Shown one piece after another: positions 39,066-42,371 of a stretch of DNA of 64,000 nucleotides; position 1 is the first letter of the stretch; each line of letters starts with the position of its first letter. The translations under genes and the position numbers were made by a program. The notes under the pieces were generated by a model. The model searched no databases and was not told the DNA's origin. It saw only the letters and a list, made by a program, of their open reading frames with translations. Source of the DNA: Rebecca billardiae RCC1528 (lineage: Eukaryota; Protista; Haptophyta); the NCBI GenBank assembly GCA_965240325.2, contig OZ251225.1:2356001-2420000 (forward strand), read 5' to 3'.

Positions 39066-40808
39066 TCACCCTTCAGAAGTTCCCAGCACGGTCCGTCTCC
39101 TCAGGTGTCGGTCGTGATCCCACATCAGTACGGCGATCTTGGTGACGAGGTAGCCGAGCATGAGGGCGGTGAGCACGCACGCGCACACAAAGTCGGCGGT
39201 GTCGCTCATCAGCAGCCGTGCCGTGATGAACTGCAGTACCATCATGGCCCACATCATCGCGAAAGCGACGTTGGTGAGCCGGTCGAGCTGCGTCATGTAC
39301 GCCGTGCGCGGCAGGCCCTCCTTCGCGATGAACAGGAACGCGACGGCCGTGAGTAGGAGCCCCGCGTTGTGCTGTGCGCGCGCGCTGAAGTCATCGAGAG
39401 GGATCTCCACGCTCGTGAAGGCCAGCGCGGAGATGAGGACGAGCGGCCACGCGACCGTGCGCAGGAAGTACCACGTCTTGCGCACGCACGGCACGCGCGC
39501 CTCGTAGAAGCTCGTGCCCGCCGTCTCGTCGATCCCCACCCTCGGCTCGATCGCGAGGAACGTGCACTCCATCGTCTCGACCGCCCCCTTGGTGCCGAGC
39601 GTGAACGGCGTGCCGTCCACAAACGGCAGCTGCCGGAAGTAGCGCCGCCGGTCGTCCGGGTGCGCGTCCCACATGCGCAGGCGGAAGGGGAGCATCTGGC
39701 AGTCGGCGGGGAAGTTGCGCAGGTCGAGCCCCACCTTGAACGTGCCGCGCAGCACCAGCTGCATCGTCACCACGTCCGGCGGGTCCGTCCTGTCCATGTA
39801 GGCGTACTGCTCCGTGCGCTCGACCTGCAGCTCATTCAGGGCGAAGCGCGGCGCGCGGATCGGCCCTCCGAGCTCGAGCGGCGTGCGCACGGCGTCCGGG
39901 TGGCGCGGCACCTCGCGCTCGAGCCCGGGGCGCCGCCACTTCAGCATCACGCGCACGTGCGCGAAGAACGCCCCCGAGGGGCTCGGCGGCTCGAGCGCGT
40001 AGAGGACCACGCCGACGCCCACGCAATCGGGGTCGGCGAGCGCAGCCGCTGAGCAGATGGGCGCGCGCAGCGCGCGCGACGCGGGGCTGAGCGCGGCCTT
40101 GAGCACGTCGAGCGAGTCGCGCACCGACCTGTTCGCGTAGATGAGCCGCGGCCGGCCGTCCGGTGCCTCGCGCCGCGCCTCGAGCGCAAAGCCCGCGCGC
40201 TCGTGAAAGCGCACAGACTTTGGGTTGGGCGGCTCGGCGACGATCACCGTAAAGACGGGCCGCGGCTTGGACGGGTGCGCGTGCAGCAGCCGTGCGTACA
40301 GCTCGGCGTAGAGCGACTGCGCGTGCCCGCGCCCTCCGGACCCGCGCGCCGTGCAGATCTGCTTCACGAGCACGAACTCGTGGCAGATGGTGTCGCGGAT
40401 GTGCGCGTTCAGTGCCTCCGTCTCGTCGTGGATGTGCTCGGACGAGTAGGCGAGCAAGAACGAGACGATGCGCCCGCGCTCCTTCAGCACGAGAAAGTGG
40501 TCGGCGCGCCCGACAAAGTCGGCGTATGCCTCCGCTGTGAAGCCTGACACCAGGAAGCCCGTCTGCGACAGGTCGGTGCCCGACTCGAGCTCGTCGAGCG
40601 CGAGCGAGTTTGCGAGCTCGCTCAGCGCCGACACGTCGGCGAGTATCGCCGACCGGACGAGCGGGACATCACGCGAGACATCCGCCTCGAGCCGTGGCTG
40701 CGACTCTGGCTTCCACCGCTCGTCGCCGGCGCGTGCGGACGGGCTGTTGCGCGAGAGCATCGGGCGCCCTCCTGCGCCTTGCGAGCCGATCAAGGAGCCG
40801 GTCGCCAT
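39066..40808 (-). CDS. GNAT acetyltransferase fused to a Cys-less (Pro-loop) pentameric ligand-gated ion channel
   Basis: Intronless. GNAT motifs VKQICT...GRGHAQSLY and PPNPKSVRFHERAGF. pLGIC ECD VMLKWRRP and LDLRNFPADCQ; RKTWYF...WP (M1), ARAQHNAGLLLTAVAF (M2), LPRTAYMTQLD (M2-M3), M3, M4. Confidence 0.88.
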   Translation of the reverse strand: MATGSLIGSQGAGGRPMLSRNSPSARAGDERWKPESQPRLEADVSRDVPLVRSAILADVSALSELANSLALDELESGTDLSQTGFLVSGFTAEAYADFVGRADHFLVLKERGRIVSFLLAYSSEHIHDETEALNAHIRDTICHEFVLVKQICTARGSGGRGHAQSLYAELYARLLHAHPSKPRPVFTVIVAEPPNPKSVRFHERAGFALEARREAPDGRPRLIYANRSVRDSLDVLKAALSPASRALRAPICSAAALADPDCVGVGVVLYALEPPSPSGAFFAHVRVMLKWRRPGLEREVPRHPDAVRTPLELGGPIRAPRFALNELQVERTEQYAYMDRTDPPDVVTMQLVLRGTFKVGLDLRNFPADCQMLPFRLRMWDAHPDDRRRYFRQLPFVDGTPFTLGTKGAVETMECTFLAIEPRVGIDETAGTSFYEARVPCVRKTWYFLRTVAWPLVLISALAFTSVEIPLDDFSARAQHNAGLLLTAVAFLFIAKEGLPRTAYMTQLDRLTNVAFAMMWAMMVLQFITARLLMSDTADFVCACVLTALMLGYLVTKIAVLMWDHDRHLRRRTVLGTSEG

Positions 40809-41431
40809 AAGCACCTGCCGCTTTTTGGCCCCTGTTGGAGCCTAAGTTTGGCGGCTTGGCGAGCGGCGGCGGGGGGCGGGCGCGCGCCACGAGCGGGTTG
40901 GAGGCGTCGCCGGGGTCGAGTAGCCCCGCCCCCCGCCCCGCGCTAGCCCCGCGCGCACTCCCCTCGCGCGTGAGCGTCGCCGGCGCGAGGGCGGTGTGCA
41001 CCTTGTGGCGAGCCGACCGAAGGGACGACCAGTCGCCATCTCCAAACAACTACCAGTTCAGACGCGTGCGCTTTTTTAATCCGGCCTTTTTTCTCGAGCG
41101 GGAGACTCGCGTCCGCGAACGGCTGCCGGGTTGCCAGCGCAGCGCAGCGGCACGACTGGTCGTCCCTTCGCTCGGCTCGCGGTTCCGCTGGGGAGAAAAG
41201 CAAAGCGGCAGGTGCTTACTTATGCTGGAGCCGGGCAGGCACTCCATGCTGATCGGATGCCACTGGAAGCTTCATCTTCCGCGTGGCCGCAGGCCGCCAT
41301 TGGAGGACGCATCGACTGATGCTGCGAGTGATGACGTGCGCGCGCATCGACGCGGCTCGGACGCGCGCGCGCGCGGCTGCGTGCGCGTCCTGACGATGTC
41401 GCCCCGGCCCTGCGTGCACCCCGCATGAACA

Positions 41432-42371
41432 ATGCGCAGGGCGCCATACGTCCTGCTCCGCCAGTCCCTGCACCACGCGCCATTGCCAACGGGCAGGGTG
41501 TGCGCGCGCATGTGCGCTCCTGCGCGCGTGCGTGGTGCCCGCGTGCGCTCATCGCCTGCCTGCGCCCGCCCGCGGGCGCCGCGATCCTCTGCAGGCCTTG
41601 CGTGTGCCTCTAGTCTATCTGCGCCCGCTCTCGTCCGCGTCGCCCGCGGACGGCAGCGAGAAGCCCTCCACAGAGGAGCCGGCGGCGGCAGCGGCGGACG
41701 GGACAGAATCGCCTGGCGACGCCGCGGCTGGTGCGGCCTCGGAGGAGGTGCAGGCGCTCAAGCAGCAGCTCGAAGAGCAGGCTGAGCAGCTGAACCAGCG
41801 GCATGAGCAGGTGCGCCGCGGCCCGCGGCCCCATCCGTGCACGCCCTGTGCTCTGTGCCCGCCCACAGCCGCGCGCGAGGCTTCACGGCCCCGCTCTGCT
41901 CTGCCCCCCCCCCCCCCCCCTCGCTCTCGTGTGCGTGCGCAGCTCCTGCGGGCAGTCGCGGACGCGGACAACATCCGGAAGCGCACGGCCATCGACGTCG
42001 AGAGCGCGCAAAAGTACGCGATCTCCGGCTTCGCAAAGTCGCTGCTCGATGTGGCAGACAACCTGGAGCGCGCGATCGCACTCGTGCCAGAGGAGGTGCG
42101 GACAGGCGAGGAGAACCCGATGATGCGCTCGCTGTACGAGGGCGTGAAGATGACGGACGACCAGCTGATGAAGGCGTTCAACGAGCACGGCATCGAGCGG
42201 GTCGACCCCGCCGGCGAGAAGTTCGACCCACACTTCCACGAGGCGCTCTACGAGGTGCCCGACCCAACGGCCGAGGCGGGCACGGTCGCGCAGGTGCAGA
42301 GTGTCGGGTATAAGCTGCACGAGAGGTGCCTGCGCTCCGCCAAGGTGGGCGTGGTCTCCAAGCAGAAGTGA
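41432..42371 (+). CDS. GRPE: GrpE nucleotide exchange factor, probably mitochondrial
   Basis: Exons 41432-41497, 41595-41810, 41943-42371; Arg-rich presequence; LLDVADNLERA, GEKFDPHFHEA, GYKLHERCLRSAKVGV. Confidence 0.95.

Follow-up and report, generated by a model that had tools for sequence, protein, structure and literature searches.

A leaderless fusion of a GNAT acetyltransferase fold and an ELIC-like Cys-less pentameric ligand-gated ion channel subunit in the haptophyte Rebecca billardiae and in diatoms

Architecture of the fusion gene

The window analyzed here is a 64,000-nucleotide stretch of the Rebecca billardiae RCC1528 genome (contig OZ251225.1, positions 2,356,001 to 2,420,000); coordinates below are positions within it, and the fusion gene and its parts lie on its minus strand. 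An uninterrupted open reading frame (ORF) at 39066-40814 contains a complete coding sequence without introns (39066..40808), which runs in a continuous frame from the first ATG, at 40808, to a stop codon at 39066-39068 and encodes a product of 580 amino acids that is collinear with 15 full-length homologues. An intergenic region (40809..41530) separates it from a divergently transcribed GrpE-like gene on its 5′ side. This agrees with a reading made earlier from the sequence alone, which had described one intronless ORF and whose quoted sequence strings were all present at the checked coordinates. The encoded protein consists of four parts: its N-terminus is hydrophilic and disordered, and a complete GNAT fold, a Cys-less β-sandwich with a Pro-loop, and four transmembrane helices follow. 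Its AlphaFold model reaches a pLDDT of 85 and a pTM of 0.81. The N-terminus comprises 42 residues (40683..40808), has no signal-peptide h-region by hydropathy, and is modeled with a pLDDT below 50 over residues 1 to 40, while a helical linker in the model (residues 231 to 260; 40035..40124) connects the GNAT domain to the β-sandwich.

The GNAT acetyltransferase domain (residues 45 to 230; 40125..40682), which had been called apparently complete, is recovered by Pfam, by the family profile, by a domain model, and by Foldseek. Scanned alone, it passes the Pfam Acetyltransf_1 cut-off marginally (20.9 versus 20.7 bits); all 16 members of the fusion family described below match this model at E≤1, the best at 1e-9, and the family profile finds solved GNATs in the PDB with an E value of 1.8e-6. 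The domain model (pLDDT 90.6) retrieves PAT, Naa60, RimI, and Ard1 in Foldseek at E values of 1e-8 to 1e-6, with TM scores of up to 0.8 by target. The domain alone also gave a PDB match to ribosomal protein bS16 (E value of 0.008), a short local resemblance in the N-x-x-S-x-x-F-H-x-x-G-F region; we rejected this identity since fold search and profile alike identify the domain as a GNAT.

Three motifs stand out within the domain. The first, GFLVS (40545..40559), does not vary within the fusion family and hardly does so among bacterial relatives, and is probably part of the acceptor-substrate site. The second is GNAT motif A (Q/R-x-x-G-x-G/A), the loop that binds the CoA pyrophosphate (40320..40337), which aligns as GGRGHA here and as RRKGYA in the diatom orthologues; its Gly163 is nearly invariant, and its first position is a Gly in the billardiae protein rather than Gln or Arg. 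The third, NPKSVRFHERAGF (40188..40226), follows the pattern N-x-x-S-x-x-F-H-x-x-x-G-F, with Asn197, Ser200, and His204 invariant in the 16 fusion sequences, and aligns with phosphinothricin acetyltransferases, including Brucella PAT (5dwm). These three residues and the Gly and Ala of motif A are common to the fusion family and the bacterial enzymes and align with PAT enzymes. The CoA-site motifs, for which degeneration had been named as a point to check, are conserved. The phosphinothricin/methionine-sulfoximine N-acetyltransferases (BAR, PAT, YncA/MddA, and ArsN1) have the same fold (Foldseek E value of about 1e-8), and their Asn...Ser...His...Gly-Phe motif aligns with that of the fusion GNAT at an overall identity below 20%. 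In BAR, the Ser133-His137 dyad of this motif positions the oxyanion hole (bioRxiv 10.1101/122184). Strand β4 of the fusion family carries a conserved Lys-Gln, and no counterpart of the BAR-type general-base Glu88 was recognized in an alignment that is unreliable for that strand.

The C-terminal half folds as a subunit of the pLGIC type (pentameric ligand-gated ion channel). A Cys-less β-sandwich of the ligand-binding type (residues 261 to 447; 39474..40034) contains the equivalent of the Cys-loop, a Pro-loop reading LDLRNFPADCQMLP (39687..39728) with an invariant F-P-x-D and without the flanking cysteine pair; the canonical Cys-loop positions are free of cysteine. It is followed by a four-helix transmembrane domain, M1 to M4 (residues 448 to 573; 39096..39473), and by a basic post-M4 tail with four arginines and a family-conserved Leu-Gly (39069..39119). 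In searches of the PDB, the family profile matches ELIC (E value of 1.3e-15), DeCLIC (6e-12), sTeLIC (5e-11, spanning the whole extracellular domain plus the transmembrane domain), and GABA-A receptors (1e-6). Foldseek places the model among pLGICs (E value of 4e-16; TM score of 0.65 to 0.70 by target), and VIA aligns model residues 261 to 579 to solved pLGICs with a Z score of 23 and an rmsd of 3.4 to 4.0 Å over 289 to 301 residues. Phe368, Pro369, Asp371, the pre-M1 Arg445, and Pro457 of M1 are invariant in the 16 sequences. DSSP assigns M3 to residues 509 to 534 and M4 to residues 538 to 573 of the model, and the M3-M4 loop is therefore minimal (3 to 7 residues). The β-sandwich with a Pro-loop and no Cys pair and the four transmembrane helices with a minimal M3-M4 loop, both read previously from the letters, are thus confirmed. 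Loop C is very short in the model, and for this reason the classical orthosteric pocket may be absent.

M2 (39321..39389) is the best-conserved transmembrane helix of the family. In an ELIC-aligned numbering, which also assigns L9′, it begins F-S-A-R and reads S(-2′), A(-1′), R(0′), Q2′, G6′, L9′, A13′, F16′, and E20′, keeping the channel-like L9′, A13′, and F16′ of ELIC. The Ala-Arg pore entry noted earlier is present in this protein and is not a family-wide feature: positions -2′/-1′/0′ read S-A-R here versus E-D-Q in the diatom orthologues. The anion selectivity that had been read from it does not extend to the family: with different -1′/0′ residues in its subfamilies (A-R versus D-Q), selectivity for ions is not a trait that the members have in common.

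Distribution and relatives of the two halves

Homologues show that the gene is one unit and not two, with orthologues that are 38 to 50% identical and collinear over 82 to 97% of the length. The GNAT-pLGIC fusions form a small conserved family of about eight clusters at 50% identity, carried by diatoms (Cylindrotheca, a Chaetoceros transcriptome, and a Bacillariaceae MAG) and found in marine metagenomes; the Chaetoceros orthologue is a transcript-derived protein and the Cylindrotheca orthologue a single-exon gene. Members are labeled only as acetyltransferases in their sources, because none of them reaches the Pfam channel thresholds. Single-sequence Pfam and NCBIfam scans likewise gave channel matches below threshold only, and a DUF3278 match in the family scans was set aside as a transmembrane-helix artefact. 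Since the Pfam Neur_chan models miss the whole family, an InterPro search for a GNAT + Neur_chan architecture would return nothing, and the family is not visible to domain-architecture databases. A word search with the pLGIC half returned fusion members only. In a protein atlas, the fold search returned plain pLGIC clusters only, and a feature-based search gave no usable match. Prokaryotic genomes, searched with two peptide patterns of limited sensitivity, yielded one GNAT-only relative and no fusion. We found no description of a GNAT-pLGIC fusion in the searchable literature, and to our knowledge no pLGIC channel-enzyme is known.

Among solved structures, the best sequence matches are ELIC from Erwinia/Dickeya chrysanthemi and sTeLIC, which have in common with the fusion the Cys-less Pro-loop, the minimal M3-M4 loop, and the M2 pattern Q2′/L9′/A13′/F16′. 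The gating ligands of ELIC are small primary amines. Unlike the fusion, this channel is made with a signal peptide, has its receptor domain in the periplasm, and lacks an N-terminal enzyme domain, and its -1′/0′ residues are E-R rather than the A-R of the billardiae protein. An accessory domain N-terminal to the receptor domain, as in the fusion, occurs in DeCLIC and other bacterial pLGICs (PBP-I, MCP-N/Cache), and in DeCLIC it modulates gating. However, these DeCLIC-type domains are periplasmic sensors that follow a signal peptide, whereas that of the fusion is an acyl-CoA-type enzyme fold without a leader. Jaiteh, Taly and Henin (2016, PMC4795631) described Cys-less Pro-loop receptors from protists, haptophytes and diatoms among them, and the billardiae gene belongs to this broad protist set. 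The fusion and its signal-less state are not described there, the terms acetyltransferase, GNAT, and signal peptide each occurring zero times in that paper.

The GNAT half points to a different set of relatives. Bacterial proteins with a GNAT domain and an 8xMP membrane domain (PF00583 + PF24838; some are named YncA-like by their sources) are 30 to 40% identical to the fusion GNAT and carry the same clade signature, namely GFLVS, KQIC, the motif A Gly, and N-x-x-S-x-x-F-H-x-x-x-G-F. As in the fusion, the GNAT comes ahead of a membrane module that forms homo-oligomers; its partner 8xMP is, however, unrelated to pLGICs, and the billardiae protein has no PF24838 match, the pLGIC standing in its place. 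Because the GNAT precedes 8xMP in 35 of 41 bacterial relatives of 310 to 360 amino acids, and because stand-alone bacterial GNATs of the clade adjoin an 8xMP gene, the clade in bacteria would normally sit as a cytoplasmic head atop an oligomer in the membrane. This parallel points to a general, unstudied pairing of the GNAT clade with membrane oligomers; for 8xMP (PF24838) itself we found no paper and no solved structure.

Membrane orientation and alternative readings

We consider it probable that the gene encodes an ELIC-like pLGIC subunit with an N-terminal GNAT, inserted N-in and gated from inside the cell. The bacterial parallel also suggests a second reading, in which the pLGIC-like part is an oligomeric membrane scaffold that places the acetyltransferase, as 8xMP may do, and in which conduction is lost or irrelevant. 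Three observations are consistent with such a scaffold: in bacteria this GNAT clade is joined to a membrane oligomer unrelated to pLGICs, loop C is very short, and every Pfam channel model stays below its threshold. We nevertheless regard it as unlikely, as M2, the best-conserved transmembrane helix, retains the pore pattern of ELIC, with rings of charge at 20′ and at either -1′ or -2′, the elements of the gating interface (the invariant pre-M1 Arg, the M1 Pro, and the Pro-loop) are kept, and relatives without a GNAT exist that have the same receptor and transmembrane domains.

Another question is on which side of the membrane the N-terminal half lies. The receptor domain is external in all characterized pLGICs, and this precedent would favor a conventional topology, with a leader that escaped recognition (a missed exon or nonclassical targeting) and an outside or luminal N-terminal half, in which the GNAT either acts within an acetyl-CoA-supplied lumen or does no more than bind a ligand. 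The upstream region could be taken in the same sense, since an in-frame ORF of 65 codons lies within 40809..41530 and the 5′ region is to that extent not fully understood. However, this ORF terminates at the in-frame TAG that precedes the ATG at 40808 by 12 codons, and in three species in-frame stops lie 5 to 12 codons 5′ of the fusion start codon. Over the 722 nt up to the GrpE-like gene, no frame encodes a hydrophobic stretch, a result that together with these stops makes an upstream signal-peptide exon unlikely. The absence of a signal peptide, as claimed at the outset, is moreover conserved: by N-terminal hydropathy, 15 of 16 fusion members lack one, including the transcriptome-derived orthologue and the single-exon diatom gene, and the exception (P0004) has an upstream extension with an inner Met at the point where its relatives truly start, so that no member has a credible one.

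The distribution of charges favors the opposite orientation as well. In all 14 complete members, the receptor-domain side of the membrane carries 5 to 11 Lys and Arg residues versus 0 to 3 on the other side, although this positive-inside count is a heuristic and takes in the pre-M1 arginines conserved in all pLGICs. The nearest GNAT-less relatives (P0055, P0118, P0145, and P0051) also have hydrophilic N-termini without a signal peptide and basic C-tails, with the proviso that gene models of metagenomic relatives could lack 5′ exons. Given the missing signal peptide, the K/R bias, these signal-less relatives, and the bacterial GNATs as cytoplasmic domains N-terminal to membrane domains, we infer with good support that the receptor half would face the cytosol, in line with the inverted or intracellular channel envisaged in the sequence-only reading, and we hold a conventional topology to be improbable. 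The departure from the signal peptide and external receptor domain of known pLGICs bears on topology and not on homology.

We give equally little weight to a third reading, a conflict or immunity module in which the GNAT is an effector or regulator and the channel a depolarizing effector triggered by an infection-related ligand rather than a metabolic sensor. Fusion partners of GNATs in the clade include LRRs (P0048), a conflict-system nucleotidyltransferase (PF20697), and DUF4062, and P0048 groups with the algal GNATs in a quick tree with SH-aLRT support; in addition, 8xMP, the partner in bacteria, forms a small oligomer in the membrane, and a zeta-toxin-like pair (by ORF reading) adjoins the Alkalilimnicola locus. 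Such partners occur, however, in only 3 of 150 matches, PADLOC assigned none of these proteins to a defense family, no relatives were found in viral contigs, and the fusion is conserved and single-copy-like across diatoms rather than rapidly diversifying. Finally, an annotation or assembly artefact joining two adjacent genes, which only the rarity of the architecture would suggest, is effectively refuted: the frame is continuous in this gene, more than 10 independent sources spanning different taxa likewise join the two parts by the same linker without a stop, and the two-domain model is a confident one (pTM as above).

Proposed mode of action and implications

An ELIC-like subunit gated from inside the cell could work as follows. 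The gene product would be one subunit of a probably homopentameric Pro-loop channel, with a PAT/YncA-like GNAT acetyltransferase at its N-terminus. Because there is no signal peptide and a folded N-terminal region of 445 residues precedes it, M1 would insert as an N-in signal anchor, leaving the GNAT, the receptor domain, the M2-M3 loop, and the basic C-tail on the cytosolic or organelle matrix-type side and the short acidic M1-M2 and M3-M4 loops on the other. The channel would then be gated from the cell interior, by a small cytosolic molecule at the β-sandwich, by the acetyl-CoA/CoA state of the GNAT, or by both. The most likely coupling would be that the GNAT, using acetyl-CoA, N-acetylates an amine or amino-acid-like compound that the adjacent receptor domain also senses; that acyl-CoA or an acetylated metabolite gates the channel is a speculative idea. 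More broadly, and only tentatively, a clade of protist pLGICs might be oriented inversely to every characterized member and be gated by intracellular metabolites, with an active acetyl-CoA-dependent N-acetyltransferase coupled to the receptor in the GNAT branch. The channel-enzymes TRPM2 (with its NUDT9-H domain) and TRPM6/7 (with their alpha-kinase) offer a like working principle, in that a cytosolic enzyme-type domain on a channel couples a metabolite to gating, but they belong to another channel superfamily and are not homologous to the fusion.

The pLGICs belong to the most thoroughly studied receptor families; all known members detect extracellular or periplasmic ligands, and their known accessory domains are periplasmic sensors. 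A leaderless family with an inside-type charge pattern and an acyl-CoA enzyme domain would widen the superfamily toward intracellular sensing and channel-enzymes, and would offer a compact, single-gene, intronless system for testing how the gate of a pLGIC can be operated by an attached enzyme domain. The carriers, diatoms and the haptophyte Rebecca billardiae, are major marine primary producers. If the tentative broader reading is true, the fusion would be the first channel-enzyme among pentameric receptors, directly tying acetyl-CoA or amine metabolism to ion flux in major marine phytoplankton.

Sequence and fold of the fusion protein

The reading frame of the fusion spans window positions 40814 to 39066 on the minus strand, and its first ATG lies at 40808, just where the sequence-only reading had placed the start (the coordinates of all sub-features were checked by translation). 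The 580-residue product aligns collinearly and without insertions to its homologues, 15 full-length relatives found by word search (38–50% identity, 82–97% query coverage; 496–786 residues, mostly 570–610), and the gene is therefore intronless. An in-frame TAG 12 codons 5' of the ATG ends an upstream ORF of 65 codons (40845–41040, minus strand, same frame), which starts with M-A-T-G as the main coding sequence does, is very Arg-rich, and could be regulatory or due to chance only. About 0.7 kb away lies a divergent gene for a GrpE-like co-chaperone (41532–42371, plus strand), whose ORF continues through a Pro/Arg-rich insert resembling an unspliced intron.

Scanned as a single sequence, the protein gives weak Pfam matches (Acetyltransf_1, E = 0.003; Neur_chan_memb, E = 0.1) and an NCBIfam match to LIC (E = 2e-5). 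We then searched a profile built from the 16 aligned sequences against solved structures. It matches ELIC from the Pro-loop through M4 (E = 1.3e-15), DeCLIC (E = 6e-12), sTeLIC over profile positions 265–541, nearly the whole receptor domain plus M1–M3 (E = 5e-11), and GABA-A subunits (E about 1e-6). With the same alignment as input, AlphaFold2 predicted (pLDDT 85, pTM 0.81) a disordered segment (residues 1–40), an alpha/beta domain (45–230), two short linker helices, a beta-sandwich (264–445) and four long helices (448–573). Foldseek matched this model to GABA-A, glycine, GluCl and DeCLIC structures (E = 4e-16), and VIA-align superposed 289–301 residues, within model residues 261–579, at Z 23 and an rmsd of 3.4–4.0 Å. 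The Pro-loop F368-P369-x-D371, pre-M1 Arg445 and M1 Pro457 are invariant in all 16 sequences, and cysteines are absent from the Cys-loop positions. Many other receptor-domain residues are equally invariant, including an acidic/basic block just past beta7 (W382, D383, D388, R389, R391, Y392, F393, R394). Numbered by alignment to ELIC, M2 reads S(-2') A(-1') R(0') Q2' G6' L9' A13' F16' E20', which agrees with the pore entry S-A-R proposed earlier. The diatom subfamily carries E-D-Q at -2' to 0', so the anion-type filter is not a family property. We propose that the fusion protein would form a homopentameric channel; that its pLGIC part is instead a non-conducting scaffold for the enzyme seems unlikely to us.

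Leader and membrane orientation

The N-terminal 45–55 residues are hydrophilic in 15 of the 16 members, with an acidic start conserved among several of the diatom proteins. Only P0004 departs from this pattern: it carries a hydrophobic extension upstream of an internal Met that lines up with the true start sites in its relatives, so we took this extension for a gene-calling artefact. In-frame stops precede the ATG by 12 codons in the window, 11 in Cylindrotheca and 5 in the closest relative, and no frame of the 722-nt interval separating the ATG from the GrpE-like gene encodes a hydrophobic stretch (maximal 10-residue hydropathy 1.4). The claimed absence of a signal peptide is thus borne out. 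All bacterial pLGICs in the inventory of Tasneem et al. have a signal peptide, with periplasmic sensor domains as their only N-terminal additions; a conventional topology of the fusion, reached through an unseen leader, is improbable given these upstream sequences.

The Lys plus Arg count is 5–11 on the receptor side (pre-M1, M2–M3 loop and post-M4 tail) versus 0–3 on the M1–M2/M3–M4 side in all 14 complete members, and the tail after M4, which has a conserved Leu-Gly, is of unusual length and basicity. A long folded N-terminal region that lacks a leader is expected to remain cytosolic; the folded 445-residue region would accordingly stay in the cytosol, with M1 as an N-in anchor. Among GNAT-less pLGICs, the closest relatives (P0055, P0118, P0145 and P0051, the last with three units; all unverified metagenomic gene models) likewise have hydrophilic N-termini directly ahead of beta1 and basic tails, and the fusion apparently represents one offshoot of a larger signal-less pLGIC group. 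These relatives, together with the clade in which the GNAT heads the membrane protein 8xMP, further support the cytosolic orientation. Two predicted polypeptides hold several complete signal-less, GNAT-less pLGIC units, three in P0051 (1160 residues) and about six in P0068 (2451 residues); either natural concatemers or tandem genes that were joined may explain them.

The GNAT domain and its clade

Scanned alone, the GNAT domain scores 20.9 bits, barely above the Pfam threshold of 20.7, and the family profile matches solved GNATs at E = 1.8e-6. Folded alone (pLDDT 90.6), it matches Naa60, phosphinothricin acetyltransferases, RimI and Ard1 (E = 1e-8 to 1e-6). Profile, Pfam, fold-prediction and structure-match evidence together show that both halves of the proposed fusion are real. 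Motif A (GGRGHA in the fusion protein, RRKGYA in diatoms), a GFLVS motif, Lys-Gln on beta4 and the block N197-x-x-S200-x-x-F-H204-x-x-x-G-F are kept in fusions and bacterial stand-alone relatives. The last aligns residue for residue with its counterpart motif in a Brucella phosphinothricin acetyltransferase; in the BAR enzyme, Ser133 at the equivalent site places His137, a contributor to the oxyanion hole (bioRxiv 10.1101/122184). A BAR-type general-base Glu was sought in the fusion GNAT domain and not identified. Judged by these motifs, the cofactor and catalytic region looks non-degenerate.

The domain is part of a largely bacterial clade, typically found as a leaderless N-terminal head on 8xMP: both parts are present in 35 of 41 relatives of 310–360 residues, and where a clade GNAT is unfused, an 8xMP gene follows directly downstream. 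The "octameric membrane protein" (PF24838) follows the GNAT after a 6-nt gap, with a 4-nt overlap, or fused (L001:2980–4056 in Alkalilimnicola; locus L005:3001–4058; protein P0023), and our searches turned up neither a publication nor a solved structure of the pair. Next to the Alkalilimnicola pair, a 200-residue P-loop protein preceded by a small 113-residue ORF (L001:4036–4976, minus strand) looks by eye like a zeta-toxin-type toxin-antitoxin pair. In a quick unrooted tree, 20 of 21 fusion GNATs cluster together (SH-aLRT 94), apart from the bacterial rows. Clade GNATs also occur on the C-terminal side of other domains, namely LRR repeats (in P0048, a sequence that clusters with the algal GNATs), a conflict-system nucleotidyltransferase (PF20697) and DUF4062 (P0048, P0147 and P0155 being the three partner cases), which hints at a role of the clade in biological conflict. 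PADLOC lends this no support, and a conflict or immunity role for the fusion has a slim chance at best.

Distribution and a possible mode of gating

Three diatom sources account for the named members: Cylindrotheca closterium (one exon, on a contig of 584 kb), a Bacillariaceae MAG and Chaetoceros curvisetus. The Chaetoceros protein, 597 residues long, was derived from an MMETSP transcript, so at least one species carries both halves on a single mRNA. When 1.84 billion representatives were searched exhaustively with a profile, the matches comprised some eight full-length clusters (50% identity) and additional fragments, and a metagenome scan contributed about six further marine loci; an assembly artefact is effectively excluded. 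Viral contigs yielded no relative, and a search of limited sensitivity found no fusion in prokaryotic genomes. Two variants stand out, P0002 (786 residues) with a second N-terminal GNAT copy and P0042 (767 residues) with long low-complexity inserts in GNAT and receptor domain alike.

Source annotations read acetyltransferase or hypothetical protein only. None of the 16 members reaches the Pfam thresholds of the two Neur_chan models (best E = 0.012), which is why the combination is missing from architecture databases. Jaiteh et al. (PMC4795631) report Cys-less pLGICs from protists, Emiliania and diatoms among them, and mention neither an acetyltransferase nor signal peptides. The fusion is undescribed in both inventories of non-animal pLGICs, theirs and that of Tasneem et al., and is likewise absent from a survey of diatom channels. 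Full-text literature searches, with most subscription journals outside their scope, returned nothing relevant, an absence that is not proof.

The homopentameric channel that we propose would be gated from inside, with receptor domain and GNAT head on the cytosolic side or on the corresponding side of an organelle membrane. Since the channel core resembles amine-gated ELIC and the GNAT resembles PAT/YncA-type amino-acid/amine N-acetyltransferases, the most economical guess is that receptor and enzyme would share an amine-type ligand or substrate, with acetyl-CoA as a second input.
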